The notes beneath the pieces were generated by a model, which was not told the origin of the DNA, did no database searches, and saw only the letters and a list, made by a program, of their open reading frames with translations. From positions 267,777 through 331,776 of the IMG/VR virus record IMGVR_UViG_3300047445_000186: a stretch of DNA of 64,000 nucleotides, one strand, 5' to 3'. This document shows positions 2,829 through 36,340 of this stretch, piece by piece. Made by a program: the position numbers and the translations under genes. The first letter of the stretch is position 1. Each line of letters opens with the position of its first letter.

Positions 2829-3485
2829 TTAGCCGCGGCTGATATCGATGATTGCGTCCTTCGCTGCATCGGCACCGAGCGTGGTACGGATGAACGAGCG
2901 GATTGCCGAGTCTTGCAGAGCACCCTTGGTCGGGAGCAGAACTGCGTGGACTGAAGAGCCCATGCCAGCAGAACCCTTCTTGACCTTGTTGTGCACGTTG
3001 TTACCGAGCGAGCCGGCGAACTTCTTCTGGATCGCAGCAAGGAGAGCTTGAGCGGCGGTGCGGTCAAGGTTCTGAACTTCGATCGAGAACGATGGACCTT
3101 CGTGGAAAGCTTCTTCCAGAGCTTCGTAAGCGCGGCGGCCAGTCTGATTCTTTGCCTTCAGGTCGTTCACCTTGTCTTGCTTTGCGAGAACCTTGCGATC
3201 GCGCGAATCAAGAACATCATCCCAATCTGCATCGTCGTTCGCACCAGCGGCCTTAGCTGCAGGGGTGACCTTCTTCTTGTCGCCAGCGGCCCAAGCAGCC
3301 AGAGCTGCGTCGAGCTCTTTCTTCTTCTCTGAGCTCATGCCCTTCAGACGTTCGCGTTCCTTCTTGAGCTTGTCAAGCTTGGCGTTATTGCGGAACAACC
3401 CGAAGATTTCGTTGATCTGTTCGTCAGAGAGTTCATCGCCGGTCTCGACGAATTCGTTGAACTTCTTGAAGGAAACTTTTGACAT
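2829..3485 (-). CDS. Late protein, probable internal head protein
   Basis: N-terminus MSKVSFKKFNEFVE resembles T4 internal-protein capsid-targeting sequences; TAAATA upstream on - strand (3520-3525). Confidence 0.65.
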   Translation of the reverse strand: MSKVSFKKFNEFVETGDELSDEQINEIFGLFRNNAKLDKLKKERERLKGMSSEKKKELDAALAAWAAGDKKKVTPAAKAAGANDDADWDDVLDSRDRKVLAKQDKVNDLKAKNQTGRRAYEALEEAFHEGPSFSIEVQNLDRTAAQALLAAIQKKFAGSLGNNVHNKVKKGSAGMGSSVHAVLLPTKGALQDSAIRSFIRTTLGADAAKDAIIDISRG

Positions 3486-3575
3486 ACCCGTGATCCTGTG
3501 ATCGTTGTAATTTGAGATTTATTTAGACCCGGTAGCCAGAAGATCCCAATGTCCAGGTGCATACGAAGGCACGAT

Positions 3576-3585
3576 CGTTACAATT
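3576..3585 (+). promoter_or_regulatory. Middle-type promoter CGTTACAATT
   Basis: Same decamer recurs at 9031, 12454, 27433 and 35058, always intergenic ahead of + strand operons. Confidence 0.7.
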
Positions 3586-3591
3586 GTTCTC

Positions 3592-3957
3592 ATGTTCCAT
3601 CCTGTTCTGTGGCGATGGCACAACCACCAAGGGATCAACATGAGACGTTTTATTCTGGTTACGGCTACGCAGTCGGAACCGGCCGGGGTGAAGACACACT
3701 CTGGCATCAAGAAGCTCAAGCGAGGAGTCGGGATCGTTGACTTCATGAGCGAGTACCTCGAGCAATTCGCAGGTCAAAAGGAAATCTACGCACGTGGCGA
3801 AACGCAGGTCGCGTTCGCTCGCGAAGATAACAAGTCCATTCAATGGGCATTCACCGAGTTCGCAGAAGACGAGCTCATTCGGGCCGTGTCGAACCTGACC
3901 CGTGAAGAACTCCTTCGCGATCTGAAAGAACTGCTCCCGCTGAAGGCTGCGCTGTGA
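3592..3957 (+). CDS. Hypothetical protein (alternative start ~3640)
   Basis: First ORF after promoter; GTGA overlap with next gene. Confidence 0.6.
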   Translation: MFHPVLWRWHNHQGINMRRFILVTATQSEPAGVKTHSGIKKLKRGVGIVDFMSEYLEQFAGQKEIYARGETQVAFAREDNKSIQWAFTEFAEDELIRAVSNLTREELLRDLKELLPLKAAL

Positions 3958-4595
3958 GTACCTTAGTTGGTTTGAGTGGCGCCCAGGGCGGTGGAAAGTC
4001 CAGTCTCCTGAAAGAGCTGGCAAAGCGGGGTTGGCACGTCGATGACTACCGAGTTAGTCGTGCAGTTCAAGATGCTTTGGGATGGGACTCCCTCGATCGA
4101 GTTCTAGATTCATTCGAGACGATGCAGTCCTTCCAAGAAGAAGTGTACAAGCAGAAGTTCAATCGTGAGATGTACTTGAAGCGCCAAGTCGGCGCGATTC
4201 TGACTGAGCGGACATTCGCTGATTTGGCCGCGTACACTCAGTCGTGGACATGGAAGTTCTTTCCTGTCGACTCGATGATTCCGCGCTCAGCACTTCGGTG
4301 GCTGACTGACTACATCAAGAACTGCCAGCTCGCGCAGAATGAACTGTACGATGGTGTGCTTCTTCTGCCACTCATGGATCATGTCGTATTCGAAGATGAT
4401 CCGCATCGCGCAAAGAAGGAAGACGCAGAGGAGGTGTACAACTTCATCGGGGCGCTTTCCGCAATGACTGACATGCCAAAATTGGTGATCACTCAAGAGT
4501 CGATCGAAGACCGCGCGACTGAAGTTGAAGACTTTTTGAAGGACAAGCTGAACACCGTGCTTGTTCGCAGACATTACAACTTGGAAGAAAACTGA
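3954..4595 (+). CDS. P-loop nucleotide kinase-like (AAA_28/NMP kinase)
   Basis: Walker A GAQGGGKSS; ILTERTFADLAAY; EDDPHR lid region. Confidence 0.75.
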   Translation: MSTLVGLSGAQGGGKSSLLKELAKRGWHVDDYRVSRAVQDALGWDSLDRVLDSFETMQSFQEEVYKQKFNREMYLKRQVGAILTERTFADLAAYTQSWTWKFFPVDSMIPRSALRWLTDYIKNCQLAQNELYDGVLLLPLMDHVVFEDDPHRAKKEDAEEVYNFIGALSAMTDMPKLVITQESIEDRATEVEDFLKDKLNTVLVRRHYNLEEN

Positions 4596-5203
4596 TGGCA
4601 TACGTTAAGGGGTATTCAAAGGCCCACCCAGGCTCGAAGGGCTTGCTCCTCGACTGGGAAACAACTGGATCGAATTTCGGCGGTGACAGCTCGATCGATT
4701 ATCAGGGTATCACGTTCGGTGGTGTTGTGTTCGACACGACCACGTACGAAGAACTTGACTCGATCTACTGTGAACTGCAGTTCGACGACACGAAGTACAA
4801 GTGGACCGACGGCGCTGAGAAGATTCACGGGAAATCGCGTGAATACCTTGCTGAGCATGGGATCCCTCGTGAAGAAGGTCTGGCGCAACTGCTTGAGCTC
4901 TTGCTGAAGCACTGGGCTCCAGGCTCGAAAATCCTGATGGCAGGTCACAACGTCGGATTCGACAACGACTTCACCGCTCAGCTCTTCCGCGATCACGACA
5001 TGGAAGGCGAGTTCCGTCCTCATCACGTGGTTGTTGACACGAGCGGTATTGCATTTGTTCTGACTGGCGAGTACAAGTCTGACATCGTGTTCGAGCTGCT
5101 TGGTGGTCTTGGCGAGCGCAAGGAGCATAACGCTCTTGAAGATGCTCGTGCAACTCTGGCTGTTCTTCGGAACGTGCGTCAGATTTTCGAAGGCAATCTG
5201 TGA
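4595..5203 (+). CDS. DEDDh 3'-5' exonuclease (DnaQ/RNase T-like)
   Basis: ExoI DWETTG, ExoII GHNVGFD, ExoIII HNALED. Confidence 0.9.
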   Translation: MAYVKGYSKAHPGSKGLLLDWETTGSNFGGDSSIDYQGITFGGVVFDTTTYEELDSIYCELQFDDTKYKWTDGAEKIHGKSREYLAEHGIPREEGLAQLLELLLKHWAPGSKILMAGHNVGFDNDFTAQLFRDHDMEGEFRPHHVVVDTSGIAFVLTGEYKSDIVFELLGGLGERKEHNALEDARATLAVLRNVRQIFEGNL

Positions 5204-5379
5204 TCTCGTTCGATCGAACTGGGGAAACTTACATCCCCCTTCAATTGACTGGTGAGTTCCAGAAGGACTGTGATGTCACTCTGGAAACCAGGTATGGCAA
5301 GCGCCGCGTCGTCGTTCGCGATTGCAAGATCGTGTTCGAAGAGTATTTCAACAACAAACCAGAGAATTTTCCATCATGA
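5200..5379 (+). CDS. Small hypothetical protein (59 aa, not in ORF track)
   Basis: GTG start overlaps the previous stop and its stop overlaps the next ATG (coupled at both ends). Confidence 0.55.
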   Translation: MISFDRTGETYIPLQLTGEFQKDCDVTLETRYGKRRVVVRDCKIVFEEYFNNKPENFPS

Positions 5380-5744: not shown

Positions 5745-5783
5745 AGTGCAACCCGAGTCTGACCACGTTCTTACAATGTGGTT

Positions 5784-6098: not shown

Positions 6099-6270
6099 AG
6101 ACAAAACGTACGTGTACGACGGCGCGGAAGTGAAGCTCACGGGCCGGAAAGCCAAGAAGCCGAACATGGCCGGCACGCAGTTCGAACTGGTCGAAGTGAC
6201 GCCAGTTGACGAAGACAACGGCACCTGGAAGAAGTGGGTGCCACGCCAAGGACTGTTCGAGATCCAATGA
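6082..6270 (+). CDS. Small hypothetical protein (SH3-like beta barrel?)
   Basis: EVKLTGRKA...VEVTPVD..WKKWV; coupled in operon. Confidence 0.65.
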   Translation: MTTFSEDKTYVYDGAEVKLTGRKAKKPNMAGTQFELVEVTPVDEDNGTWKKWVPRQGLFEIQ

Positions 6271-6944: not shown

Positions 6945-6948
6945 CAAA

Positions 6949-15535: not shown

Positions 15536-15909
15536 TTGCAGTTGGCGATAAAGTAATTGCGAAGATCGACATCACGCAAGGTGCTGATGAAGACGGGCCT
15601 GCCCAAGTGTTCGCCACGAAGGGCACGCCTCTCGTGGTCAGGCGAATCGGTCAGCAGTGTCTGCACGTATCGCACGAGGACATTACTGATCAGTCGTTCA
15701 GGGTGTTCGACGGCGAAGTGATTGATTTTCTGCCTGATGGGAAACTTACATACGCAGTCACGGTCCAGAAGTGGGAACGAGTTGCGAAGATCATTCGCGA
15801 ATTCAAGAAGAAGAAACACGTTGGATACTTCCTGGACGTGGAAGAGCTGCCATCATCGGTGTCTCCTGAGTTCGCTTATTACCGGGTCTGGGTGTACAAG
15901 GAAGCGTAA
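15532..15909 (+). CDS. Hypothetical protein
   Basis: Coupled ORF. Confidence 0.6.
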   Translation: MIAVGDKVIAKIDITQGADEDGPAQVFATKGTPLVVRRIGQQCLHVSHEDITDQSFRVFDGEVIDFLPDGKLTYAVTVQKWERVAKIIREFKKKKHVGYFLDVEELPSSVSPEFAYYRVWVYKEA

Positions 15910-15934
15910 ATACAATCTTGAACTGAAGGATTGT
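15907..15934 (+). promoter_or_regulatory. Late promoter TAAATA plus RBS-sequestering hairpin
   Basis: TAAATA 15907-15912; ACAATCTT pairs with AGGATTGT, which contains the SD. Confidence 0.7.
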
Positions 15935-15935
15935 T

Positions 15936-16820
15936 ATGCGTCTCGACGAACTCGCCGGTGTAAAGAAATTCCAGCGACTACAGTGGCATCAAATCACGCG
16001 TCTGCTTGATCGGAAATTCGGCATCAAATACATTGGTGGCGGAAAGTACGGTCAGGTTTTCACGCACCCGGGCTGGGACTACGTCGTGAAGATCATGGAG
16101 CGCGAGGACCCGAACTATCTGGAGTTCGTTGACTTCGCGCTGAAGCATCCAGACAAGCATTATCCGAAGATCATCAAGAAGCCTTTCATGATGCACGCTT
16201 TTCACAAGCGTGAACGCAGCCAGAAGTACCAACGTCTGACTGTCCTGAAGATCGAGAAGCTTCTCCCGATCGAGAAGAACAAGCTTGACTTCATTGTTCA
16301 GAACCTGGATCAATACGCCAGCATCGTCACTCGGTACAAGAACAACGAGTACAAGCACGAGAAGAACCAAGAGGCGTACACGCAAAAGCATCCACACCAC
16401 ACGAAGGTCTTGCCTGACGGCACAAGTGAACAGAACCTGTCGTACAAGGACATCTTCGATCGGTACCCATGGTTCGAGGATCTGTGCTGGGCATTCCGCC
16501 GGATCATGGACAACTCGGAGTACGGGTCGGCCGATATCCATGGTGGGAACTTCATGGAGCGGAAAGACGGCACCGTCGTGATCATCGATCCGCTGTGGGA
16601 AGGATACAACTTCGAAGCTGCTGCATGGCAGGCCGAGATGGCTGAACGCGGCGACTACTGGGGCGACTACGAAGAGCACATCCCAATGGTCAGCGGCCCC
16701 GGGTATGACAGTGCACGCAAGCGTGAAGAACAAGAAGCGCTCGAGAAGAAGGAAGCCGAAAAGGCGGCCAGGATTGCTGGCGTGTTCGCGCACAATTTCG
16801 ACGACGATATTCCGTTCTGA
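15936..16820 (+). CDS. Protein-kinase-like (ePK/APH fold) protein, late, with putative capsid-targeting N-terminus
   Basis: IGGGKYGQVF Gly loop, YVVKI, DIHGGNFM catalytic loop, VIIDP; starts MRLDE. Confidence 0.85.
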   Translation: MRLDELAGVKKFQRLQWHQITRLLDRKFGIKYIGGGKYGQVFTHPGWDYVVKIMEREDPNYLEFVDFALKHPDKHYPKIIKKPFMMHAFHKRERSQKYQRLTVLKIEKLLPIEKNKLDFIVQNLDQYASIVTRYKNNEYKHEKNQEAYTQKHPHHTKVLPDGTSEQNLSYKDIFDRYPWFEDLCWAFRRIMDNSEYGSADIHGGNFMERKDGTVVIIDPLWEGYNFEAAAWQAEMAERGDYWGDYEEHIPMVSGPGYDSARKREEQEALEKKEAEKAARIAGVFAHNFDDDIPF

Positions 16821-19503: not shown

Positions 19504-20727
19504 ATGACATCTCCGGTCGATACATCCGTCAAATCTTTCGATAGCACCATGCTCGGTGCTCCAGCCCTGAGTGGTACTGCTGGCACCACAATTGGCGTGC
19601 TTGATGCTTGCTTGGTGAACGGGTTCGACACACGTGCTGCTTCATCTATCGTTGTTTCAGGTGGTGTGGCTACGGTGAGCTACTCGGGTGCAGTGCACTC
19701 AGCTCGGTTGAACAGCGTTATTCTCGTGTCTGGCGTGACTGACATCACGTCGTTGAATGGTGAACAGAAGATCACGGCAGTCGGTTCTGGCTTCGTGAAG
19801 TTCGCGACAGCGGCCTCGCCAGGTACCGCAACCGGCACGATCTCGTTTAAGATGGCTCCACTCGGATGGGTGAAGCCCTTCAATGGTACCAATATCGGCG
19901 TGTACCAGTCGAGTGACATCACGTCAACAAAGTGCTACCTTCGCGTTGACGATACTGGTACCCAGACATGCCGCGTTATGGGGTACGAAACCATGACTGA
20001 CGTGAACACTGGACTTGGTGGATTCCCGCTGTCTGGTCAGATTCTTGGTCCTGTCACAGGTGGTGGTTGGTGGTACAAGAGCGCTCAGGTCAACTCGACC
20101 CCAGTTGTGTGGTCTATTCACGGTGACGGCAAGATCTTCTACATCAACATTCAGATGGGAACTAGCACGAACGCCTCGTATCAAATGACGTCTGGGCGTG
20201 TGTTCGGTGATCCAATTCCGTACAGACCTGGCGGCGATCCATACTGCTGCATTTTGAACTATGCCACTGCATCTGGTGGTATGGCCGGTGGTGTTGGAAA
20301 TACGTACAGCTCATCTGCAAATTGCTCATTCGCGACACCTCGCGATTTCACTGGAATTGGATCCGCAGTTGGGAACTTCTTGATGCAGTTCGGAATCCCA
20401 GTAGGCTCTAACTCAAATTCAGGAATTACGAACTTGGCTGGGGCATTCCCATCGTACATCGATGGAAGTCTTTGGTTGTTCCAGAAATTTCTTGCCGCAA
20501 CTTCAACTGGCATGCCGCGGGCGCTCATGCCAGGTCTTTATATTTGCGGGCAGTCTAGCATCTATAACAACTTTAAGCAGGGCGATACGACCCCAGGCAC
20601 AGGTGCTCTTGCTGGTCGATGGCTACGTGCAGCAACGTCAAATGATGATGCAACCGTGCCGAACACGGCAAGCACAACGGCGAACACAGGTATCATTTTC
20701 TTTGATGACACTGGGCCGTGGAGATAA
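19504..20727 (+). CDS. Tail-fibre-associated protein, paralog A1
   Basis: MTSPVDTSVK...LDACLVNGF...APLGW...LRVDD...FFDDTGPWR; paralogous to 22994 and 37160. Confidence 0.75.
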   Translation: MTSPVDTSVKSFDSTMLGAPALSGTAGTTIGVLDACLVNGFDTRAASSIVVSGGVATVSYSGAVHSARLNSVILVSGVTDITSLNGEQKITAVGSGFVKFATAASPGTATGTISFKMAPLGWVKPFNGTNIGVYQSSDITSTKCYLRVDDTGTQTCRVMGYETMTDVNTGLGGFPLSGQILGPVTGGGWWYKSAQVNSTPVVWSIHGDGKIFYINIQMGTSTNASYQMTSGRVFGDPIPYRPGGDPYCCILNYATASGGMAGGVGNTYSSSANCSFATPRDFTGIGSAVGNFLMQFGIPVGSNSNSGITNLAGAFPSYIDGSLWLFQKFLAATSTGMPRALMPGLYICGQSSIYNNFKQGDTTPGTGALAGRWLRAATSNDDATVPNTASTTANTGIIFFDDTGPWR

Positions 20728-20730
20728 ACA

Positions 20731-22993: not shown

Positions 22994-24199
22994 ATGACAT
23001 CTCCAGTAGATACATCCGTAAAATCATTCGACTACTCAATGTTGGGAGCGGCTGCCCTGAGCGGCACGGTCGGCTCGTTGTTGCCAATTCTTGACCAATG
23101 CCTGGTGAATGGGTTTGACACTCGAGCAGCGTCAAGCATTGTCGTTTTTGGCGGGATCGCGACAGTAAGCTACACCGGCATTACGCACTCTGCGCGTTTG
23201 AACTCGGTTATTCTCGTGACTGGTGTGACTGACCTTACGGCCCTGAACGGAGAACAGAAGGTCACCGCCGTCGGCTTCGGTTTCATTAAGTTCGCAACCA
23301 GTGTTGCGAACGGTACCGCGACCGGTACGATCTCGTTCAAGATGGCTCCACTTGGATGGGCGATTGCGCAGACAGGTACTAATCTTCGCGCGTACAAATC
23401 GACCGATGTTACATCGACCGGCTGCATTCTTCGTGTCGACGACACCGTTGCCACGTCGTGCCGTGTCGTTGGATACGAAAGTATGACCGACATCAATACT
23501 GGTCTTGGCGCATTCCCGACTGCTTCGCAACAGCCTGGCGGCGGGTACTGGGTGAAGAGCATTACGGCCTCGGCGGGTACTGTCCTCTGGTCTATCCATG
23601 GGGATGGGAAGGTGTTCTACCTGAATGTTCAGCCTGGTAGCGTTTCTGGCGCAGGTTTTCAGATCACTTCTAATCGTATGTTCGGAGACATTATTCCGTT
23701 CAAACCGGGTGGTGATCCTTATGCGTGCGTAATGAACTACTCGATCACGTCAACGATTGGCGCGATGCACGACGCCGGTGTTGGTGGGTCGGCTGTCACT
23801 CAGTTCGCTCAACCACGCGACTTCACGGGGCTTGGATCAGCGGTGATCTCGTTTATCTACCCGTACAACGGCACGACTCTGAACACAATTTCCGGCATTA
23901 CCTCGATTGCAGGTCCATTCCCATCTCAGGTAGATGGTGGCATTTGGTTGAGCTCAAAGTATCTGAACACCACCACCAGCGTTGGCATGCGTGGTCAGCT
24001 TCCAGGCGTATTGCACTGTGGTCAGAGCGGGGTATGGGCCTCGTTTAAAATGGGTGACACGACGCCCGGCTCTGGCCCCCTCGCCGGGCGTTCGCTGCGC
24101 GCTACAACAGCAGGGCACGATACGACAGGTAGTAACACCACCTCGTCAACTGCAAACACCGGGATCATGTTCTTCGACGACACTGGGCCTTGGCGATAA
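22994..24199 (+). CDS. Tail-fibre-associated protein, paralog A2
   Basis: Same termini and core motifs as A1. Confidence 0.75.
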   Translation: MTSPVDTSVKSFDYSMLGAAALSGTVGSLLPILDQCLVNGFDTRAASSIVVFGGIATVSYTGITHSARLNSVILVTGVTDLTALNGEQKVTAVGFGFIKFATSVANGTATGTISFKMAPLGWAIAQTGTNLRAYKSTDVTSTGCILRVDDTVATSCRVVGYESMTDINTGLGAFPTASQQPGGGYWVKSITASAGTVLWSIHGDGKVFYLNVQPGSVSGAGFQITSNRMFGDIIPFKPGGDPYACVMNYSITSTIGAMHDAGVGGSAVTQFAQPRDFTGLGSAVISFIYPYNGTTLNTISGITSIAGPFPSQVDGGIWLSSKYLNTTTSVGMRGQLPGVLHCGQSGVWASFKMGDTTPGSGPLAGRSLRATTAGHDTTGSNTTSSTANTGIMFFDDTGPWR

Positions 24200-24202
24200 G
24201 CA

Positions 24203-27200
24203 ATGGCTACGCACAGATATTGGCGCGCTAAAAATCTTCAGGCGTACGGCGCAACCGGCCTAGACATCACTGAGTACCAGCTTTTTGTTGGCAGCACACG
24301 TGTTGACGGCCCGGCGACGCTCACCTCCAACATCGCGCCATCAACTGGTTCATTGTCATATCTGCAGGACGGGCTAGCTACGAACAGCGCAATCTGGCTA
24401 GCAGCTGATGTTCCCAAACTCGTGCTCTCGTGGGACTTTGGTTCGACATCCGGTAACTGGGTTGATGTGAATGACATTCAGCTCGGTGGTGGCGCGCTTC
24501 GGCAGAATTTTCTGGCGTTCTCCACTCTTCAGTACTCGGATGATGCCAGCACTTGGACAGATGCATTCATTAGCACTACGAACGGCTATGTTGCGGGTGC
24601 GTACGCGTGGCCTGGAAGTTTTACGGCCACCACGAGTAGACCATTCTCGTACAATAGTCTGACAGTGTTGCTTCACGGTGATGGTACTGACGGTGGGACC
24701 ACGTTCACGGATAGCTCAACGAACGCATTCACGGTCACCCCCACAGCTACAACAACAAGTGCAACGCAGAAAAAGTTTGGTACGACTGCGCTTTCGTTCA
24801 ATGGCGCGACCTGTAAGCTGTTGATCGCGCACAACAATGCGTTGGTTCCGAGTGGAGATTTCTGCATTCAGTGTTACGTATGGGTTGCTTCTGCGACGGC
24901 TGCGACTCATCGATTCATCGTGAACAAATCGATCTCAAGTGGAGTCTGTCCATACGCATTTGCTGTGATGTCGACAGGTGTGTTGTCTGCTAATTCATAC
25001 AACGCGGCTGGCACGTCGATGGTGAACTTCACCGCGACTCAGTTAATCACAGCTCAGACTTGGACACACGTAGCGTTCACACGTCAGGGCTTGATTTACC
25101 GTATTTTCATGAATGGTCAAATCGTTGCGCAGGCAACGGCGCCATCAACTGGCGCGCTGTACAACAACAATACGCACCCGATGTGTATTGGGAACGTGTC
25201 AGACAGCATTTACCCTATGTTTGGAACAGGTGGTACCGGGTACATTGACGAGTTCTCATTTGATGCGAACAACGCTGTGTACACTGCGCCATTCATTCCA
25301 CCTGCGGCTCCAGGCTCAGGTGGTGGAATCGTGCTTACGAACAATTTCGCGATCTCATCTCCGACTGAGCCGTCTACGGTAGGAAATGGTGTATCATCGT
25401 ATGGCGTATCAGCGGTGTCAATTGCGCCGGAAACGGTCGCAGATGTTATCGCCATGTCAGCGCCAACAGTGTACGGTGTAGCTCCACCTCCAGTTTTCTT
25501 TGGTGTCAGCACGACATTGATGCTCTCATATGGTGCTGGACTGCGAGCGCCTAATAACACGCGTGGTCGAAATGATTTCGTCACTGGTGTTCTCGGCTCT
25601 GGCGTCGGACGAATCGACGGTGTTGTGCAAGTTCCTGGTACGCCAAATCAGCCAGTGAAGCGTCGTGTTCGTCTGTACAGGCAAGAAGACGGATACCTTG
25701 TGCGCGAGGCCTGGAGTGATTCAAGCACTGGGGCGTTCTCATTTGACTACGTTGACGAGAAACAGCTGTACTACATCTGCGCATTTGACCACACGAATGC
25801 GTTCGTTGGGCTGATCGCTGACAACTTAACGCCATCCCTGCTTGAAACTTCTACTGTTGACGCATACGCAGGTGCTCTGAAGAGACTGATCACGATCACT
25901 GGCGCAGGTGGTGCAGGTACAGGATACGCTATGTTGTTCAAGATTGGGGAGAGCAGCGGTTCTGCCGGCTCCGATTTCAACCTTGAAGCTGTTACAACGA
26001 CGTTCCCACTTGATAAGAACATCCCTGGCGATGTGCAGTTCACTGACGTCAGTGGAAGCCCGCTTCCACAGTGGGTCGAGCAAGTCACCGGGACGGCACC
26101 GAATCGTGTTGCATGGTTCTGGGTTAAAGTTTCGGCCGATCTGAGTACAACGCAGTCGATTTACTGCACGTACCGGAATGGTATGAGCACCGCAAGCAAT
26201 GGCAATACCGTGTTCCTGTTGTTCGATGACTTCGATGACGGCACGCTCGATACTGGAAAGTGGTCGAACGTCACTGGATCAGGCAGTTATGTAATCTCCG
26301 GTTCTGAATTCGTACTCACCGGTACTGGTGTTGGTCGCGCGCTTTATTCGGCCACGACGTTCGGTGATGGAATGGAAGTGGTTGGTAAGGTCGGACCATC
26401 GGCTACCTCGCTGAGCTACAACGGTAAGTTCGGTTTCGAAACGCAGTACATCTTCCAAAATGACTGGGACAGCCAAGGATCATCGGAAGTTGTAGTTGGC
26501 CCATCGACTAAGACACAACTTGACGCGCGCTATCAGACCACGTATTACAGAATGCGAATCCGGCGTGCGGGTGGCGCAGGTAGCATGTTGGTCAATGACG
26601 TGGTGAAGCATACACAAGGTTCTGGGATTGGGACTTCATCTGTGCCAGTTTGGCTGATGAACGTGTATGACGCCACTGTTGCCGGTAAGGTTGATTGGAT
26701 CGCAGTCAAGAAGTACATGCTCACCGAGCCTACGTACTACTCGGCCGACACCTCCATTCCTGCGGCGACTACCGTGATCAACATGACTTTCGATACCGGG
26801 AACGGTTCGACTACGTTCACGGATACTGGTTCACAAGCATCAAGTTGGCAGATCGGTACGGGCGCGGTTCAGTGTTCGACGACAGCGGTTCTTGAAGGCG
26901 TTTCATCGCTCTTTGTTCCTGGTGGTGGCTTCGCCTATCTGTACACTACAGCGTACTCCGCGAACATGCTTCCAGCTACCTCAGACTTCTCGCTGAAATT
27001 CAAGGCGCGTTCGTCGTCATGGCTGCGCTTTGACGCTTCTGGGTGCTATTTGATCTCGATTCAGGGCGCGGTAGGAAATGGAGCAGACACGCAATTCGCG
27101 ATCGCAACGAATCTGAATACATATCTGGCATTCGCGTATAGTGACGGCACGACGCGTTCAGCAGTGACTGGGACTACTCCTGTCCCGGTGAATGTGACCG

Positions 27201-27394
27201 TGTCATTCGAGTTCAAGCGAGTAGGCAGTACACTCTCATTGCTGATGAACGGCGTGCTTCAATGTTCTGCTACTCTGTCTGGCGCGTTGAACGTGCCGTC
27301 TGGTCAGCAGTGGCGAATCGGTGCACCGGCCGGTGCACAAGGCGGTGCATTTAACGGGATGTATTTCGACTCGCTCTCGCTTACTGTTGGTTAA
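24203..27394 (+). CDS. Tail fibre / receptor-binding protein B2 (HRYWR + LamG + RRVRL module + DUF2341-like + LamG-like)
   Basis: MATHRYWR; LLHGDG LamG; VQFTD..LPQWVEQ..FWVKV..SNGNTVFLLFDDF is DUF2341-like. Confidence 0.78.
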   Translation: MATHRYWRAKNLQAYGATGLDITEYQLFVGSTRVDGPATLTSNIAPSTGSLSYLQDGLATNSAIWLAADVPKLVLSWDFGSTSGNWVDVNDIQLGGGALRQNFLAFSTLQYSDDASTWTDAFISTTNGYVAGAYAWPGSFTATTSRPFSYNSLTVLLHGDGTDGGTTFTDSSTNAFTVTPTATTTSATQKKFGTTALSFNGATCKLLIAHNNALVPSGDFCIQCYVWVASATAATHRFIVNKSISSGVCPYAFAVMSTGVLSANSYNAAGTSMVNFTATQLITAQTWTHVAFTRQGLIYRIFMNGQIVAQATAPSTGALYNNNTHPMCIGNVSDSIYPMFGTGGTGYIDEFSFDANNAVYTAPFIPPAAPGSGGGIVLTNNFAISSPTEPSTVGNGVSSYGVSAVSIAPETVADVIAMSAPTVYGVAPPPVFFGVSTTLMLSYGAGLRAPNNTRGRNDFVTGVLGSGVGRIDGVVQVPGTPNQPVKRRVRLYRQEDGYLVREAWSDSSTGAFSFDYVDEKQLYYICAFDHTNAFVGLIADNLTPSLLETSTVDAYAGALKRLITITGAGGAGTGYAMLFKIGESSGSAGSDFNLEAVTTTFPLDKNIPGDVQFTDVSGSPLPQWVEQVTGTAPNRVAWFWVKVSADLSTTQSIYCTYRNGMSTASNGNTVFLLFDDFDDGTLDTGKWSNVTGSGSYVISGSEFVLTGTGVGRALYSATTFGDGMEVVGKVGPSATSLSYNGKFGFETQYIFQNDWDSQGSSEVVVGPSTKTQLDARYQTTYYRMRIRRAGGAGSMLVNDVVKHTQGSGIGTSSVPVWLMNVYDATVAGKVDWIAVKKYMLTEPTYYSADTSIPAATTVINMTFDTGNGSTTFTDTGSQASSWQIGTGAVQCSTTAVLEGVSSLFVPGGGFAYLYTTAYSANMLPATSDFSLKFKARSSSWLRFDASGCYLISIQGAVGNGADTQFAIATNLNTYLAFAYSDGTTRSAVTGTTPVPVNVTVSFEFKRVGSTLSLLMNGVLQCSATLSGALNVPSGQQWRIGAPAGAQGGAFNGMYFDSLSLTVG

Positions 27395-30384: not shown

Positions 30385-30429
30385 CGGATCAGGATGACCT
30401 AAATAGAGACTTCTAGTCAGAGAATTCAA

Positions 30430-32754
30430 ATGCGAATTATTAGCGAAGGTGCTGGGATTACCCACATCGAAGACCTCCCTGTTGGCGAGTTCATCCGAGT
30501 CCTGCGGAACATGCCACTCATGACTGCGCAGGAAAAGCTCGATGGTGCTCAGCTCTGGGTCGGTGTCGACGAGGCCGGGAAGCTCTTCGCTTCCCGTGAA
30601 GGTAAGCGTTCCGGTTCGGACCGTAAGTACTCACCGGACGACTGGAACCTGGTCTCCGCGAACAATCAATTCCGCGCTGCTCATGCTGCTCTCGTAGCAG
30701 TGCAAGACAAGATCCTTTCGGTACTGCAGCCTGGCGACACGGTTGAGGCCGAGGTGTTGTTCGGGCGCCAACCTAATAGTGTCACTTACGGTGCTGGTGG
30801 AAAGTCCTACATCGCGTTCCTGCGTGGTGTCCTCGAGACCGAAGACTCGGTCGCTGAACGGCTCGGTGCCGCGCTGAAGGGGCAGGAAGCCGAAGCGAAG
30901 GTTCAAGTGGTTGACACCGAAGACGGCGAGACCCTGAACGACGTCGAAGAATCGTACCCGTTCATGTTCACGACACCCCAGCGCGTCGATCCAGAGAAGC
31001 TGAAGCAAGCGGCTCAAGTTGAGAAGCTCCTGAAGAAGCTCGAAGCTTTCCTGCAAGAGCCAAGTGGTACCGAAGGTCTGTCGAACAACGAACTGCTGAA
31101 CACCAATCTGCAAAAGATTCCGACTGATAAGCGACCAGCAGTGAAGGAAGCACGGAAGGCTCTGATGGAACTCGTGATGAACGAGTACAAGATGCCAATC
31201 AAGAACGCGCTCCTTGACAATGTGGTTCGCAAGATCCGCTCTGGCCTGAGTGATGAGGACAAAGGCACCGGGGCCGACATTGGCATCGAAGGAATTGTGC
31301 TGCGTGATCAGCAAACCGGTGAACAGATCAAGATTGTCGACAAGGACATCTTCACGGCGATCAACACGTTCAATCAGTCCATTCGTCAGACTGTTCAATC
31401 ATCTCTGACTACCGTCGATCCAGACTCTCCGCTCGAGCAGCGTGGTGGTCTCGTTGGTGAGCTCCGTATTCGGATCGCTGAGCTGTTCGGTAATCGCGAA
31501 ATGGCGAAAGCTTCGAACACCCGCAAGGTTCTTGAGCCACTGAAGGGCAAGTCGCCTGAAGAAGCAATTGAGAACATGGCGAAGTCGATGGGCGCAATTG
31601 AGGACCACGAAGCGATCAAGAAGAAGATTCTCGCAATGGTCTCTGATACGGCCAGCCAGTTGAAGTCGAAGCTTGAAGAGTTCAAGGCGAATCAGAAGAA
31701 CTACAAGCTTCAGCTTACGAACGGCAAGGAAATCAGCCTGAGCGACGACACGATCAAGCGTACTCTGTTGACGTTCGCTGAAGCCCGCAAGAACCTGTTG
31801 ATTATGTTCGAGCACCTGAAGGCAACAACGACTCTGGCGCAGATCCTCGCGGTCCTGTATGGCGGTCAGGCAAAGGCTGTTCACGCACCGAAGATCGACG
31901 AAGGCTTGCTCCTTGAGAAGAAGGTGAAGCGGAAGACGACACAGGCTCAGGACGTTGATCGTCATGAGTACGACAAGCGTGATGTGTTCCAGCTCGTGAA
32001 CTCGTACCTCGCTACGGTGTTCATGACGATGTTGGTCTGGCACGAAGATGACAAGCCAGGTATGCGGATCCTTCGTGACCGTAAGAACATGGGTCTGAAG
32101 AATTGGTCGAGCGACATGAGCCCGTTCAATCACTGGGGCTATGTCATCTGGCGAAATAACAAGCCTGACTTGAAGAAGCAACTGTCGAAGAAGGTTCAGC
32201 ACGAGCTGTTCGCTACTACCCGTCAGATCCAAGCTCCACGCTGGCGCTTCCTGCACATTGACTTCTCGACGAATCGGGATGTGAAGGTTGACTGGGCCGA
32301 TCACCGGAAGACTCTGCAACGCCTGATTGATCTTACCCGGCTGCGTTCAGATCGACTAAATACGCTACTCGACAAACTGATCCGTTTCCCTGATCTGTCG
32401 CATGATGAGAAGCTCTCGGCCGTGAAGAAGCTGCATACGTTCGCGATGCAATTTGTTCCACGCTCGGTTATGCTCTCTCGGCTGAAGATCATTGAACGGG
32501 CACTCACGAACGGAAAAGACGACCAAATGGTGACTGAAAGTAAACTGCTGAAGTCAATCAGTGCTCTCGCTGAAGACGAAGGTGGCGAAGGCGTGTACAC
32601 ACAGCCTGTCAGCGTTGCCGGAACCACATCTGCCGCAATTGCGCCAGTTCAATCACGCGTAGCCCGGGAAGCAACGATCATCAAGCGTAAACGGAATCCT
32701 TCCGTGAAGCGTCTGACGATGAAGTTCCCTGATCCACGCAAGGAAAACGAATGA
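30430..32754 (+). CDS. Late protein with ATP-dependent ligase-like nucleotidyltransferase N-terminal domain
   Basis: EKLDG (I), ASR (Ia), EAEV (III), IAF (IIIa), IEGIVLR (IV), KIVDK (V); TAAATA 30400-30405; starts MRIISE. Confidence 0.7.
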   Translation: MRIISEGAGITHIEDLPVGEFIRVLRNMPLMTAQEKLDGAQLWVGVDEAGKLFASREGKRSGSDRKYSPDDWNLVSANNQFRAAHAALVAVQDKILSVLQPGDTVEAEVLFGRQPNSVTYGAGGKSYIAFLRGVLETEDSVAERLGAALKGQEAEAKVQVVDTEDGETLNDVEESYPFMFTTPQRVDPEKLKQAAQVEKLLKKLEAFLQEPSGTEGLSNNELLNTNLQKIPTDKRPAVKEARKALMELVMNEYKMPIKNALLDNVVRKIRSGLSDEDKGTGADIGIEGIVLRDQQTGEQIKIVDKDIFTAINTFNQSIRQTVQSSLTTVDPDSPLEQRGGLVGELRIRIAELFGNREMAKASNTRKVLEPLKGKSPEEAIENMAKSMGAIEDHEAIKKKILAMVSDTASQLKSKLEEFKANQKNYKLQLTNGKEISLSDDTIKRTLLTFAEARKNLLIMFEHLKATTTLAQILAVLYGGQAKAVHAPKIDEGLLLEKKVKRKTTQAQDVDRHEYDKRDVFQLVNSYLATVFMTMLVWHEDDKPGMRILRDRKNMGLKNWSSDMSPFNHWGYVIWRNNKPDLKKQLSKKVQHELFATTRQIQAPRWRFLHIDFSTNRDVKVDWADHRKTLQRLIDLTRLRSDRLNTLLDKLIRFPDLSHDEKLSAVKKLHTFAMQFVPRSVMLSRLKIIERALTNGKDDQMVTESKLLKSISALAEDEGGEGVYTQPVSVAGTTSAAIAPVQSRVAREATIIKRKRNPSVKRLTMKFPDPRKENE

Positions 32755-35018
32755 ACCTCCTCAAAGAATTCTCCAAGGGCGACGTCCAGCAGAATCTGAA
32801 AACCAGCGATCAGTCCGATGCTGGTACGACTGACACTGCAGCGAAAGCTGTTGACGTGAAGTTCTCGCTTATGCGGAACGCGATCAACACCGACAATAAT
32901 GAAATCACCGGTTCCGACGTGAACGATTACCTTGAGCGTGCTCAGGATCTGAACGACGAAGTTGAATCCGTTGGTTTCGCGATCGAGACCGATGACGGTT
33001 CCTTGATCAAAATCTACGTGAACGCTGAACAAGCCGACGCGTTCAGCGAAGAGCTCGCAAAGGTGCTCGGCCTTGACGATGACGCTGAAGTAGCGATCAA
33101 CAATCTTGCTCAGAAGTACGACATTGTTGACGTGGTATGGCCAGACTCTGGTGATGTAAATGCACTCGGCTCGGGTGATGAAGATGAATTCCAATTGGAC
33201 GGACCAGGAGAGCCTGGAGACAATGACGGAGACGTTTCTATTGACGACGATCTGTCTGACTTTATGGGTGGTGATGATCACGCTGCTGAACCAACCGCAA
33301 CTGACGCTGCGTCTGATGAGACTGCTGATGCCCTTCCAGCCGATGACGAATCTGCTGACGGTGATGTACCTCCGGAATCGGGTGAAGACGATGGTGATCT
33401 GTCCAAGGATGATTCCGATGGCGATAAGGCTGATGGCGATAAGCCTAAGAAGAAGCCTAAGAAGTCTCTGATGAAAGACGTCGCTGGTGGCGACGATGCT
33501 GAAGACGACAAGGGCGAAGAAGAAGGTGGCAAGCCTGAAGGCGCTGATGGTGAAGAAGGCGGCCCAGAAACAATCGATGACGGTGAAGATGAAGGCGACG
33601 CTGATGTCGATCCAGATGCTGAGCCAGACGCCGGCGAAGAATCCGATGAGCTTGACGATGAAGGCAAGCCAAAGAAGAAGTCGAAGAAGAAAGACAAAGA
33701 AGTAACGGAAGAAGGTATGAAACTTAGCAAACTCGAATCGATGGCGAAGGCCCTCACAGAAGACCAGCTCGACGAAGCTGGTGGCACTGATCTGAAACTC
33801 GACACGCAGTGGACTGGCCTTCGTAGCCGTCTGAAGCGCCCGTACGAGAAGAAGATTGTTGAGCTGTTCTCAATGCTCGGCGTTCCAGGTCGTTATGTTG
33901 TCGCTGAAGAAGGTGTTGAAGACCTGATTCGCGGTGCAGCAGACGTTATCCGTCGCCCAGGTCGTAAGCAAACGACGTTCAATGAGTTCTATTCGCAAGT
34001 GAAGGCAAGCACAGCTACCACGAACGAAAAGAAGCGTGGTGGTCGTCTGCAAAAGGTTCTCGAAACCGTGATGATTGAACTCGGCTTCCCAGCATCGCTG
34101 GTCAGCACTGAGTCTGGTCCAGGCGCTCTTGGTACCGTTCTTGGCCGTGCAGCGAACAAGATCGAAGCAAGCCAATCGCTTGAATCCGCTCTGATCGCAT
34201 TCGCTAAGGCAATGGGTATCACGTCCGCTCAAGTGAACGAAGCAAAGACGATCAAGGTCAAGGAACCAGGTTGGTACGTTGTTGACCACATGGACAAGGC
34301 AGTTGCTGGTCCAATGCAAGAACGTGGTGCACACGAACTCTGCGATGAGATGAATGCTGGCAAGACTGGTGGCGACATCAAGGCTTTTGACGTTACGTAC
34401 TTCACGGATTACGAAATCCGCCGCATGAACGAAGCTGTTGTTACCGAAGCAGTTGACGTTGGGAACGACGAGTTCTTCCAGAAGGTTGTTCAACTTGCGG
34501 TGTCCCTCGGTATTCCAGAACGCAATCTGCAGTACGGTCGCCCAGCACTGGTGAAGTCCCTGCGCGACAAGAAGATGTCCCTCTCGAACCGTGGCATGAT
34601 CGAAGCACGTGTTGATCAACTGCTCGCTATCATCGAGAAGGCAACTCGCCAAGCTCCAGCGACTGCACAAGCTACGAATGAAGGCATGCTTGCTGAAGCA
34701 TTCGACGCGCTTGAAGCTATCCCACAAGAGATGTACCAACGTTTCAATGTGCAAGAACCTTCGACCGGTCCAGTGATGATGGCTGGTTACGTTGGTGACA
34801 CTGACGCGCATTCTGAGACTGTTCTGGTTCTTGGCGTTGACCCAGAAGCAGAAGGTCGGAACACTCTCCGCGTTGGCGTTGACAACCCATGGAGCGGCTC
34901 TGTTCAATCGAAGTATTTCCCAGACACGCGCGAAGGTTACCGTGACGCACTGCGTTACGCGAAGATGCTCCGCACGCTGAACCTGAAGACTGGCGGTCGT
35001 CCAGCTGAAGTGAAGTAA
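32751..35018 (+). CDS. Acidic prohead core/scaffold-like or internal head protein
   Basis: Long D/E-rich disordered tract; repeated (L/V/M)xE-A sites (LDEA, VNEA, MNEA, VTEA, LAEA); strongly biased codons. Confidence 0.65.
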   Translation: MNLLKEFSKGDVQQNLKTSDQSDAGTTDTAAKAVDVKFSLMRNAINTDNNEITGSDVNDYLERAQDLNDEVESVGFAIETDDGSLIKIYVNAEQADAFSEELAKVLGLDDDAEVAINNLAQKYDIVDVVWPDSGDVNALGSGDEDEFQLDGPGEPGDNDGDVSIDDDLSDFMGGDDHAAEPTATDAASDETADALPADDESADGDVPPESGEDDGDLSKDDSDGDKADGDKPKKKPKKSLMKDVAGGDDAEDDKGEEEGGKPEGADGEEGGPETIDDGEDEGDADVDPDAEPDAGEESDELDDEGKPKKKSKKKDKEVTEEGMKLSKLESMAKALTEDQLDEAGGTDLKLDTQWTGLRSRLKRPYEKKIVELFSMLGVPGRYVVAEEGVEDLIRGAADVIRRPGRKQTTFNEFYSQVKASTATTNEKKRGGRLQKVLETVMIELGFPASLVSTESGPGALGTVLGRAANKIEASQSLESALIAFAKAMGITSAQVNEAKTIKVKEPGWYVVDHMDKAVAGPMQERGAHELCDEMNAGKTGGDIKAFDVTYFTDYEIRRMNEAVVTEAVDVGNDEFFQKVVQLAVSLGIPERNLQYGRPALVKSLRDKKMSLSNRGMIEARVDQLLAIIEKATRQAPATAQATNEGMLAEAFDALEAIPQEMYQRFNVQEPSTGPVMMAGYVGDTDAHSETVLVLGVDPEAEGRNTLRVGVDNPWSGSVQSKYFPDTREGYRDALRYAKMLRTLNLKTGGRPAEVK

Positions 35019-35033
35019 ACGTGAACCTAGTTT

Positions 35034-35055
35034 GAAAGGGCCTTCGGGCCCTTTC
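35034..35055 (+). terminator. Terminator with cUUCGg tetraloop
   Basis: GAAAGGGCC-TTCG-GGCCCTTTC. Confidence 0.85.
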
Positions 35056-35057
35056 TT

Positions 35058-35067
35058 CGTTACAATT
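35058..35067 (+). promoter_or_regulatory. Middle-type promoter CGTTACAATT
   Basis: Directly after the terminator; TACAAT ends 10 nt before ATG 35077. Confidence 0.65.
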
Positions 35068-35076
35068 GAAACTTCT

Positions 35077-35751
35077 ATGAAATTCAACTACCAAGACTAT
35101 CAGACGACGAGTGAGCTCGGCCTTCGGTGGTATCACACACCAGATGGCGCGTTCCCCTCGATCACGACAGTCCTTGGTGTGTCTGAACCTCCAGAGAAGA
35201 AGGCTTCCCTTGTTGCGTGGCAACAATCTCTCGGTGCTGTAAAGGCTGCTGAAAAATCGAAGGAAGCGACTGATCACGGCACGATGGTTCACCTTTTGGC
35301 CGAGCGATTTCTGAAGGGTGAAGAGGTCTTTGCTCCTGTTGACGGGAAGCCAGTCTCTGATGTTAGCAAAGCCGGGTTCAACGGCTTGAAGCTGAAGCTT
35401 CGTCAGATCAACGAGGTCTGGGGTCAGGAAGAATCGATCTACTCGCCGACCCTCGAGGTTGCTGGTCGCTTTGACTGCATCGGCCTGTACAAGAACAAGC
35501 CATCCGTGATTGACTTCAAGACCGCTGGCCGTCTGAAGTCGCGGAAGGACATTGAAGATTACGAACTGCAGCTCGCGTTCTACGCTGCTGCGCACAATGA
35601 ATTGTTCGGCACCGAGATCACTCAAGGTGTCGTGCTGATGAGCTCTGCCGGTGGAATGCCACAGGAGTTCGTTGTTGATGTCGACTCGAAGCTCGAAGAG
35701 CTGGTCGGCCGAATCCAGATCTTCTGGGAAAAGACTCTCTCCAAAGTATGA
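35077..35751 (+). CDS. PD-(D/E)XK (Cas4/RecB/MGME1-like) exonuclease
   Basis: FPSITTVL, GTMVH, AGRFDCI, VIDFKT, QLAFYA. Confidence 0.88.
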   Translation: MKFNYQDYQTTSELGLRWYHTPDGAFPSITTVLGVSEPPEKKASLVAWQQSLGAVKAAEKSKEATDHGTMVHLLAERFLKGEEVFAPVDGKPVSDVSKAGFNGLKLKLRQINEVWGQEESIYSPTLEVAGRFDCIGLYKNKPSVIDFKTAGRLKSRKDIEDYELQLAFYAAAHNELFGTEITQGVVLMSSAGGMPQEFVVDVDSKLEELVGRIQIFWEKTLSKV

Positions 35752-35924
35752 ACACCGCTCCGCTGACCGAAGAAGAGAAGGCCCTAATCATCGCTGGTGG
35801 TTGGAAGTTCCTGAGTGACGATCACATCTACATTCCGGAAGATTACGACGGATGCATGGCGTCCGGAATCGAGCAGATTCGTAAAGTGCTGTTCGCCATA
35901 AATAGGTCTCGCAATCGAGACTGA
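35748..35924 (+). CDS. Small hypothetical protein (not in ORF track)
   Basis: MNTAPLTEEEKALIIAGGWKF...; ATGA overlap with nuclease stop. Confidence 0.5.
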   Translation: MNTAPLTEEEKALIIAGGWKFLSDDHIYIPEDYDGCMASGIEQIRKVLFAINRSRNRD

Positions 35925-35926
35925 AC

Positions 35927-36340
35927 ATGCTCCTGAATGAAATCAAACTTGGTACCAAATCTGACCCTGAAGCCCTGAAGGCTTTCATGGCTGACATGCG
36001 CGCGAACACTGAAGCGCATCCATTCGCTCGTGGAATGGTAATTCATAATGACTCCGTCGGGGTTGAGGTATCAATCTTTGACGGCAAGATTCACCTGAGC
36101 TCGATCATGAGCTTTGTTCAGAAGAACGCTGGTGAAGCTTCGAAGACTCTGAAATTCCTGACTGATCTTGCTGACAAGCACCAGGTGATCATGGATCTGG
36201 CCGTTTCGCCGATCAAGAACGCCGGCGCTCGTGAAGGTAAGAGCCTTACGAAGGCGCAGCTCACGGCCTGGTACGGTAGGTACGGTTTCAAGAAGGCACG
36301 TGGCGATTACATGGAGCGCCCACCTGGCGCCGCTGCGTAA
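35927..36340 (+). CDS. GNAT-fold acetyltransferase-like protein, late
   Basis: IHLSSI..QKNAGEASKTL (motif A-like), LADKH, LTAWYGRYGF; TAAATA 35899-35904; starts MLLNE. Confidence 0.65.
   Translation: MLLNEIKLGTKSDPEALKAFMADMRANTEAHPFARGMVIHNDSVGVEVSIFDGKIHLSSIMSFVQKNAGEASKTLKFLTDLADKHQVIMDLAVSPIKNAGAREGKSLTKAQLTAWYGRYGFKKARGDYMERPPGAAA

Follow-up and report, generated by a model that had tools for sequence, protein, structure and literature searches.

Short T4-like leaders on a set of probably virion-carried enzymes of a T4-related jumbo myophage

The last 64 kb (positions 267,777 to 331,776; all 64,000 nucleotides are referred to here as the window) of the linear 331,776-bp IMG/VR record IMGVR_UViG_3300047445_000186 (GC 54%) encode several proteins with short N-terminal leaders that resemble the capsid-targeting sequences of phage T4. 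As judged from sequence comparison and predicted structures, the virion probably carries about 30 such proteins with late-type expression, among them a kinase, an RNA-ligase-like enzyme and a small acetyltransferase. A previous sequence-only reading of the window had proposed that five late genes bearing an (I/L/F)xE tag, three of them with enzyme folds, encode effectors that are packaged, processed and injected into the host. For at least most of these five, we slightly favor on balance that they are expressed late, recruited to the prohead core, stripped of the leader by an S77 protease and carried in the head, while ejection and early action on the host would follow from the T4 precedent. 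The five candidate genes and the TAAATA elements in front of four of them are listed below. Window coordinates count from the window start and genome coordinates from the record start; the leader classes are defined in the next section.

window 3520..3525, minus strand: TAAATA, 34 nt upstream of the 218-amino-acid (aa) gene
window 2829..3485, minus strand: basic protein of 218 aa, isoelectric point (pI) 9.2, class B-type leader SFKKFNEFVE (MSKVSFKKFNEFVE)
window 15907..15912, plus strand: TAAATA, 23 nt upstream of the kinase gene
window 15936..16820, plus strand: protein-kinase-like enzyme of 294 aa, phrog_15752 (T7 gp0.7-type) E 2e-10, strict tag MRLDEL
window 30400..30405, plus strand: TAAATA, 24 nt upstream of the ligase-like gene
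window 30430..32754, plus strand: ligase-like protein of 774 aa, leader MRIISE, then a domain from G-x-G-I-T-H-I-E-D-L
window 32751..35018, plus strand: acidic protein of 755 aa, pI 4.3, leader MNLLKEF, translationally coupled to the ligase-like gene
window 35899..35904, plus strand: TAAATA, 22 nt upstream of the GNAT gene
window 35927..36340, plus strand: minimal GNAT-fold protein of 137 aa, leader MLLNE, disordered in the model

All five open reading frames (ORFs) were found with the N-termini previously described for them (MSKVSFKKFNEFVE at 2829-3485 on the minus strand, MRLDE at 15936, MRIISE at 30430, MNLLKE at 32751 and MLLNE at 35927). In each, the N-terminal leader ends in (L/I)-x-E, and in four of them it is only 4 to 6 residues long.

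The record is 94% complete according to CheckV, and a self-trained caller predicted 495 genes across its whole length. Near-identical DNA is present in eight rhizosphere metagenome runs, and none of the runs listed is RNA. A megablast search with 20 kb of the window against phage records gave no match. The closest counterparts of the major capsid protein are those of Ralstonia phage RsoM2USA (51%), of the Xanthomonas phages Xoo-sp13 and XacN1 and of the Stenotrophomonas phages CM1/RAS14, with the Rak2/121Q group next. By its capsid sequence, this uncultured soil phage is therefore a T4-related jumbo myophage and not phiKZ-like.

Leader classes and their enrichment

The (I/L/F)xE rule by which the five genes had been selected proved too loose. 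The motif [ILFMV]-x-E occurs within the first seven residues of 15% of N-termini and in 10.6% of internal windows, and five such tags among the approximately 70 window genes are not significant alone. These values would suit the explanation that the five tags are a chance pattern picked by eye, an explanation to which we assign next to no probability. In contrast, the strict pattern M-x-[LIVMF]-x-E-[LIVMF] was detected in 19 genes versus 2 to 2.8 expected (7-fold, p 1.7e-10), and the same pattern was detected in 48 genes of RsoM2USA versus 3 expected (16-fold). When N-termini were scored without gaps against seven T4 leaders, five exceeded the 99.9th internal percentile here (0.5 expected) and eight exceeded the threshold in RsoM2USA (0.5 expected). 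Tags and promoters also co-occurred, with 24 of 31 tagged genes located in TAAATA operons compared to 135 of 464 untagged genes (odds ratio 8.4, p 1e-7). Because the strict patterns are enriched and the leader class is conserved across hundreds of metagenomic orthologues, the chance explanation is already refuted. The set of five also turned out to be much too small: the tagged set comprises approximately 31 genes genome-wide, with at least one more in the window.

Two classes of leaders were distinguished. Class A leaders follow M-x-Φ-x-E-Φ, or the same with one extra residue (e.g., MKLQEL, MKVNELFEA, MKIQELLSE and MLLTEL); the first variable residue is often K, R or L, and a second Φ-x-E frequently comes next, with A, S or G behind it. 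Class B leaders follow M-x-(S/T)-F-x-x-F-Φ-x-E (e.g., MISFKQFLAE, MLSFIDFLAE and MEKFEQFLAE) and are represented in the window by MSKVSFKKFNEFVE and MAVSAFNKFNDF. A further T4-like N-terminus in the genome is MLITELFSKDTTL. The corresponding T4 leaders (NC_000866) are MKTYQEFIAE in ipII/III, MKTFKEF in ipI, MAKINELLRE in gp24 and MELITELFDE in Alt; others are found in gp22 (MLKEQLIAE), gp67 (MEGLIEAIK) and gp68. In sequence, class B thus corresponds to the internal-protein leader of T4, and class A to the leaders of gp24 and Alt.

Of the proteins with a known role, the prohead protease (MQLLKEY), the core protein encoded next to it (MKLLQEM) and the capsid protein (MQLNENW...ALLEG) have tag-like N-termini. 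No such N-termini were found in the tail sheath, tube, portal, polymerase, clamp, primase or helicase proteins. RsoM2USA orthologues of three tagged proteins bear the other tag class, and the motif is kept at the amino acid level across genomes of 33%, 41%, 44% and 54% GC. In the AlphaFold2 models of the ligase-like protein (residues 1 to 460) and the GNAT protein, residues 1 to 7 form the only segment with a predicted local distance difference test (pLDDT) score below 50. The comparative behavior of the leaders is the strongest computational evidence obtained here and favors a modular, removable leader.

Late-type promoter, prohead protease and capsid maturation site

There are 89 copies of TAAATA on the two strands of the genome, and the hexamer is not overrepresented overall. 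Its placement is strongly biased: 70 of the 89 copies lie 0 to 70 nt upstream of a start codon on the same strand (4.7 expected, p 2e-71), and the distance to the start codon peaks at 20 to 39 nt. A G or C stands on either side of the element (S-TAAATA-S), and the -35 region shows no conservation. The late promoter of T4 is a -10-only element, TATAAATA; the architecture here is alike, but the first TA is missing. TAAATA stands ahead of the protease gene and of genes orthologous to those for the sheath, tube-like, neck, baseplate and giant virion proteins of RsoM2USA. The genes for the polymerase, clamp, exonuclease, primase, helicase and ribonucleotide reductase do not have it in front of them. 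ATAAATA is present at equivalent places in RsoM2USA and in a 373-kb relative. On this sequence evidence, TAAATA behaves as a genuine late-type promoter element.

Four of the five candidate genes are located directly behind TAAATA, as had been claimed. The fifth, the 755-aa gene, has a start codon that overlaps the stop codon of the ligase-like gene (ATGA) and lacks a promoter of its own. The term late promoter used in the sequence-only reading is consistent with the position bias and with the gene classes served, both of which match T4-type late-promoter behavior; late timing itself is read from the motif. Late expression of the TAAATA genes, predicted in this way, is well supported.

A T4-type head module is located at the start of the record and contains a gp20-like portal gene, the S77 prohead protease gene, two core/scaffold-like genes and the gene for the gp23-like capsid protein (PF07068 E 5e-84; also detected by phmmer against T4 proteins).

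genome 5877-6485: S77 (gp21-family) prohead protease, PF03420 E 2e-27

The protease motifs GELNHP and GVSSRG, which contain the His and Ser residues, align with T4 gp21. At the position of the cleavage site of T4 gp23, L-T-E65↓A, the aligned sequences are L-L-E↓T-A-G in this phage, I-A-E↓T-A-A in RsoM2USA and L-A-E↓T-A-S in XacN1. Because the motif is kept at this capsid maturation site, hydrophobic-x-Glu specificity has very probably been retained by the protease. A 124-aa paralogue of the prohead protease (genome 55738-56112) has GSIGYP and HFRPAG in place of the catalytic His and Ser motifs and is probably an inactive protease-like protein.

Structural genes were also observed elsewhere in the window. 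Three paralogous cassettes (window 19504-22944, 22994-27394 and 37160-38990) each open with a protein of approximately 400 aa starting with MTSPVDTSVK (phrog_9998/9600, tail-assembly-like). The next gene encodes a baseplate-wedge/fiber-like protein in cassettes 1 and 2 (737 and 1,063 aa) and a 208-aa protein without a family match in cassette 3. TAAATA is present ahead of two of the three cassettes, which look like multiple alternative receptor-binding sets. Two giant genes on the minus strand (window 48989-62695) encode proteins of 1,601 and 2,960 aa. The 2,960-aa protein (phrog_10938, virion structural protein) begins with MKLMKDY behind TAAATA and is the orthologue of the RsoM2USA virion protein ORF361 (>288 kDa); the 1,601-aa protein has no family match.

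Candidate cargo proteins

The nucleotidyltransferase fold previously assigned to the 774-aa protein was confirmed by structure comparison, in which the top matches were all covalent nucleotidyltransferases. An RNA-ligase-type adenylyltransferase fold, in which the KxDG motif is invariant, spans residues ~8 to 310, and the model of residues 1 to 460 was of high quality (pLDDT 90.7, predicted TM score 0.85), with a disordered leader. No assignment was obtained for the last 310 aa of the protein. The closest structures were Trypanosoma brucei RNA-editing ligase 1 (TbREL1; Z 10.6) and T4 Rnl2 (Z 9.7), followed by tRNA ligase (Z 9.3) and DNA ligase I (Z 8.6). Invariant alignment columns are K36, D38, G39, E287, G288 and K301. 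None of the five candidate proteins matched a Pfam family above the cut-off; the RNA_ligase family reached E 0.011 with the ligase-like protein, below the cut-off. Likewise, a profile search of Protein Data Bank sequences with the ligase-like alignment retrieved no ligase, and the fold is thus seen by structure comparison only. A role as the replicative ligase was rejected. As the genome encodes a DNA ligase and two RNA ligases of canonical type, the 774-aa protein would be an extra, specialized enzyme.

The leader of this protein varies considerably. A search gave 249 metagenomic homologues, and in a comparison of 120 homologues the leader was 0 to ~20 residues long and, where present, ended in (L/I/V)-x-E right before [GS]-I-x-H-[IL]-E-D-L. 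The sequence in this phage is MRIISE↓GAGITHIEDL, and the RsoM2USA orthologue most likely starts with the class B sequence MLTFKQYAQPILTE↓GISHLEDL. If leadered orthologues are cut after Glu, they would therefore have the same N-terminus as leaderless ones after Met removal.

The acidic 755-aa protein belongs to a family with the conserved start M-(S/K/N)-L-(L/I)-K-E-(F/I/L). In approximately 20 homologues (P0226, P0235, P0300 and others), it is fused behind the ligase-like protein in polypeptides of 1,000 to 1,300 aa. The fusion junction contains the tag-like motif (F/Y)-S-L-(L/I)-K-x-Φ-(N/S)-E-(D/E), so in those relatives the head protease may free the two proteins from a polyprotein. The same late operon contains, between the genes for the acidic protein and the GNAT, an untagged PD-(D/E)XK/Cas4-like exonuclease gene (window 35077-35751; phrog_298, E 2e-48).

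The GNAT fold of the 137-aa protein, also part of the earlier proposal, held up. The model (pLDDT 85.5) matched AcrVA5, Naa50, RimI and Gcn5 with Foldseek probabilities of 0.99 to 1.0, and the best match was AcrVA5 (6iuf; TM score 0.74 over 96 residues, root mean square deviation 2.3 Å). AcrVA5 is a GNAT anti-CRISPR protein that acetylates Cas12a. Both proteins are very small GNATs from mobile elements, but with 15 to 16% sequence identity their likeness is structural. AcrVA5 is not known to be packaged in virions. In 22 homologues, the leaders fall in a gap-rich stretch ahead of the conserved core and switch between forms such as MKLFE, MLVTE and MRIFE and forms such as MKFKEFLAEA, MKFKQYLLET and MVTFKQFLQES.

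The kinase fold, the third that had been proposed, was confirmed by the match to phrog_15752 and by invariant residues in an alignment with nine metagenomic homologues: G36 and G39 of the Gly-rich loop, the catalytic Lys K52, D200 and N205 of the D-x4-N catalytic loop and the metal-binding Asp D218. A tblastn search of phages with the kinase gave no match. Its C terminus carries the following feature.

window 16800..16817, plus strand: last six residues of the kinase, DDDIPF, the same as the C-terminal protein-docking tip of bacterial SSB

This end is kept in eight of nine homologues. DDDIPF is the C-terminal docking motif of SSB, SSB-Ct (PMC5872125), which suggests recruitment of the kinase to SSB-tip-binding proteins. 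A second protein ending in DDDIPF (genome 160766-161383, 205 aa) gave a weak DUF669/SSB-like lead. T7 gp0.7, after which the PHROG family of the kinase is annotated, is an early, nonpackaged protein; the kinase described here differs in its late-type promoter, targeting-type leader and DDDIPF end.

The basic 218-aa protein has no recognizable domain (Pfam; a look-up gave weak leads only) and is partly disordered. In size, charge and leader it is like the T4 internal proteins. Two further tagged proteins were found in or reaching into the window.

window 43208..43651, minus strand: missed candidate of 147 aa, start MAVSAFNKFNDF, leader as in the 218-aa protein, TAAATA 32 nt upstream (43684-43689)
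window 1..903, plus strand: C-terminal two-thirds of a basic protein of 429 aa, which starts 386 nt before the window with MKVNELFEA behind TAAATA

The leader of the 429-aa protein is like that of T4 gp24 (MAKINELLRE). Just upstream of its gene are a tagged kinase paralogue and a gene for a tagged 121-aa protein; the match of the latter to T4 ipII was weak (14.7 bits) and was not relied upon. Tagged proteins outside the window include an Amidoligase_2 protein (5e-10), an AAA ATPase, an HD plus AAA_33/polynucleotide-kinase-like protein and a second kinase paralogue. Two tagged paralogues outside the window gave subthreshold ART-PolyVal matches.

Two small proteins (genome 246428-246847 and 253317-253799) start with MLITELFSKDTTLTVV and MKIFEILNTNTTLTVV and match T4 Alt (MELITELFDEDTTLPI) over the first ~16 residues only; neither has ADP-ribosyltransferase (ART)-domain homology to Alt. 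TAAATA is located only 5 nt before the ATG of both genes and overlaps the upstream stop codon in one, which would mean that the mRNA is almost leaderless or that the start was called wrongly. In RsoM2USA, approximately 40 tandem paralogues of ~190 to 215 aa (171-214 kb) all start with MKLxEI or MRLxEI and have no homologues in this genome. This array is either a hyperexpanded tagged family or evidence of another role of the leader.

The presence of leaders on head proteins raises the question of whether the tagged proteins are assembly components (core, scaffold or inner-body-like) that are directed to the prohead core and then degraded or kept as structural parts, and are not ejected effectors. 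The T4 core proteins gp22, gp67 and gp68 and the T4 protease bear such leaders (PMC5694885), and the protease and neighboring core protein are tagged here. Long acidic runs, as in T4 gp67, are present in the 755-aa protein, and the 218-aa protein has no enzymatic domain. We nevertheless consider this explanation improbable. A kinase with intact catalytic motifs, a KxDG adenylyltransferase, a GNAT and ART-like proteins lack an obvious scaffold role, and the precedent for a tagged enzyme, T4 Alt, is ejected and modifies the host (PMC5512222).

Packaging, its alternatives and known systems

From the tags and their statistics, the promoter bias, the homology of the protease and its cleavage site, the folds and the modularity of the leaders, we infer targeting, cleavage, retention, ejection and host action as follows. 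Tagged genes would be transcribed late from S-TAAATA-S, a trimmed form of TATAAATA. By its leader, each protein would be drawn into the scaffolding core while the prohead assembles, and the S77 protease would cut off the leader after Glu. The mature enzyme would be kept in the head beside the DNA and exit with it at the next infection. Predicted cargo from the window comprises the kinase with its SSB-tip tail, the RNA-ligase-like adenylyltransferase and its acidic partner, the AcrVA5-like mini-GNAT and one or two small basic proteins resembling internal proteins. From elsewhere in the genome, two ART-like proteins, the amidoligase, the AAA ATPase, the HD plus polynucleotide-kinase-like protein and the second kinase would be added. 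The packaged-effector proposal of the sequence-only reading is thus upheld in its T4-like tags, late-type promoter and three folds, and the S77 protease and capsid cleavage site add to it; its tag rule and the size of its set did not stand.

Virion proteomes of relatives offer some support. Liquid chromatography-tandem mass spectrometry identified ten RsoM2USA virion bands as ORFs 38, 86, 89, 132, 257, 356, 359, 361, 383 and 438 (PMC8504454), and the ORF numbers of that paper equal the GenBank locus tags. ORF89 and ORF132 start with MKTFKQFL. The 774-aa protein has its orthologue in ORF438 (34% identity, E 5e-68, shared synteny), next to which lies the acidic orthologue ORF437. In phage PA5oct, 6 of 12 strictly tagged genes with concordant starts carry a GenBank note of detection by tandem mass spectrometry with electrospray ionization (ESI-MS/MS), compared to 93 of 461 genes overall (p 0.02). 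The class B protein encoded directly upstream of the PA5oct ligase homologue is among those marked. The PA5oct paper reported sigma70-like promoters only and did not report cleavage.

A number of observations weigh against packaging. The mass given for ORF438 is 51.69 kDa (PMC8504454), while 62.4 kDa is predicted; because of this difference, the identification is not clean. No RsoM2USA ORF has a predicted mass of exactly 51.69 kDa (that of ORF429 is 51.58), and the gap reflects either processing or an error or mislabeled band. The PA5oct ligase homologue is not one of the 93 virion proteins marked as detected by ESI-MS/MS. Chitinase and lipase, two virion enzymes of XacN1, are untagged, and other routes into the virion therefore exist. 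The strict tag patterns were defined after the data had been seen, a concern that is limited because one pattern replicates in RsoM2USA and the T4-derived score agrees. T4 targeting sequences are 10 to 20 residues long (PMC5694885), and leaders of 4 to 6 residues are shorter. Many ligase-like orthologues are leaderless (M-S-I-T-H, M-G-I-Q-H), yet are located behind ATAAATA. All nine kinase homologues begin with M-(L/K)-(L/I)-x-E-(L/I)-(T/A)-G-V-K; this leader, unlike a modular one, is conserved together with the residues behind it (GVKKF) across the family, and it is therefore possibly part of the fold. In addition, the kinase gene is located within the replication module, and its SSB tip would fit an intracellular replication or repair role equally well.

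A gp55-type late sigma factor was also not found in the 94%-complete record by phmmer and tblastn (queries T4 gp55 and the RsoM2USA gp55-like protein). RsoM2USA encodes a gp55 homologue (E 7e-8 to T4 gp55). Because its syntenic position falls at the contig break in the present record, we did not take this nondetection as a negative. In RsoM2USA, ~16 kb including the gp55-like gene lie between the giant virion protein gene and the baseplate/head module, and in place of these the present record has ~1.7 kb over its two contig ends (genome 330.5-331.8 kb and 1-0.4 kb). This is probably where the 6% of the genome absent from the record belongs.

Several of these points are accommodated by an explanation without packaging signals. 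The leaders could be a shared N-terminal feature (translation-start context or helix) of late cytoplasmic proteins, with the enzymes acting inside the infected cell: the kinase via its SSB tip on replication or repair, the ligase-like protein in the repair of RNA or DNA and the GNAT on a protein of the host or the phage. We regard this explanation, the main alternative, including the roles it assigns, as possible but unlikely. It fits the kinase best, given its replication-module location, conserved leader and SSB tip. The kinase and the ligase-like/acidic pair are located beside or within the replication module (polymerase, clamp, exonuclease, primase and helicase) with synteny kept in RsoM2USA and L053, the N-terminus of the kinase is a family feature, and leaderless ligase-like orthologues are common. 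Furthermore, the ~40 RsoM2USA MKLxEI paralogues are more than are likely to be packaged, and half of the tagged PA5oct proteins are unseen in virions, two of them encoded in the early region. Against this explanation, the motif is kept as amino acids over genomes of 33 to 54% GC. Orthologues also swap between two sequence-unrelated leader classes, both of which mimic experimentally defined T4 targeting sequences, and the leaders terminate in the P3-P1 motif of the protease, which the capsid maturation site retains as well. The virion proteomes of relatives are enriched in tagged proteins, replication and tail proteins are untagged, and canonical DNA and RNA ligases are already encoded in the genome.

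Carriage in the head would, if extended to the clade of XacN1-, RsoM2USA- and PA5oct-like phages, make the leader an address label that lists the injected proteome. In the present phage, that proteome would be an enzymatic strike force acting before phage gene expression. We offer this extension only tentatively, as we find it rather doubtful. It would have the kinases reach SSB-client proteins via the mimicked SSB tip and an RNA heal-and-seal pair formed by the Pnk-like protein and the RNA-ligase-like protein with its acidic partner; the ADP-ribosyltransferases, the amidoligase and the AcrVA5-like acetyltransferase would also be injected. If the leaders work as they do in T4, the injected proteins of jumbo phages would be predictable from metagenomic sequence alone, providing a shortlist of first-minute takeover and antidefense enzymes in unculturable phages. 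The T4 capsid-targeting principle, which has already been used for loading foreign proteins into heads, would then extend to a large clade of soil and plant phages, of which RsoM2USA and XacN1 are under consideration for biocontrol. The kinase with its SSB-tip tail provides a concrete idea of how a phage enzyme might find host DNA repair and restart proteins.

The closest known system is that of the T4 capsid-targeting sequences (IPI-III, Alt and gp24, processed by gp21). Previous research has shown that diverse T4 defense proteins share only a targeting sequence (PMC3012670, PMC5694885). The present phage has a homologous S77 protease and a gp23-type capsid protein, near-identical leader classes with Glu at the leader end, a -10-only late-type promoter and diverse cargo sharing the leader only, with an ART-like enzyme among the cargo, as Alt is in T4. 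In contrast to the ~5 tagged proteins of T4, the set here, known from sequence alone, comprises ~31, and many of its leaders are only 4 to 6 residues long. The predicted cargo is also dominated by enzymes (kinases, ligase-like nucleotidyltransferase, GNAT, amidoligase, ATPase and Pnk-like protein).

The phiKZ-like giant phages (phiKZ, 201phi2-1 and SPN3US) also have many internal head proteins, which are cut after Glu by a gp21-related protease and ejected. However, their motif is (A/S/G)-x-E and their propeptides are often longer than 100 residues (PMC5694885), whereas the leaders described here are short and T4-like with a hydrophobic P3 residue, and the phage is kin of XacN1, RsoM2USA and Rak2, not phiKZ. 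ART, kinase and GNAT domains are the main protein-modifying domains of the polyvalent proteins of phages and conjugative elements, which are predicted to be injected with phage DNA (Iyer et al. 2017, PMC5512222), and this conflict-domain repertoire (ART, protein kinase, GNAT and nucleotidyltransferases) is common to the cargo proposed here. In polyvalent proteins, the domains are part of one giant polypeptide, often as MuF/portal fusions, whereas here they are encoded by separate genes with their own leaders, and only the ligase-like/acidic pair is fused, in some relatives of this phage. Literature searches on capsid-targeting sequences yielded no description of such a system for XacN1-, RsoM2USA-, PA5oct- or Rak2-like phages. 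Overall, the mechanism is known from T4 (PMC3012670, PMC5694885), and what looks new is that it would extend to this clade of jumbo phages, with leaders that are so short, a tagged set of such size and a cargo that is enzymatic.

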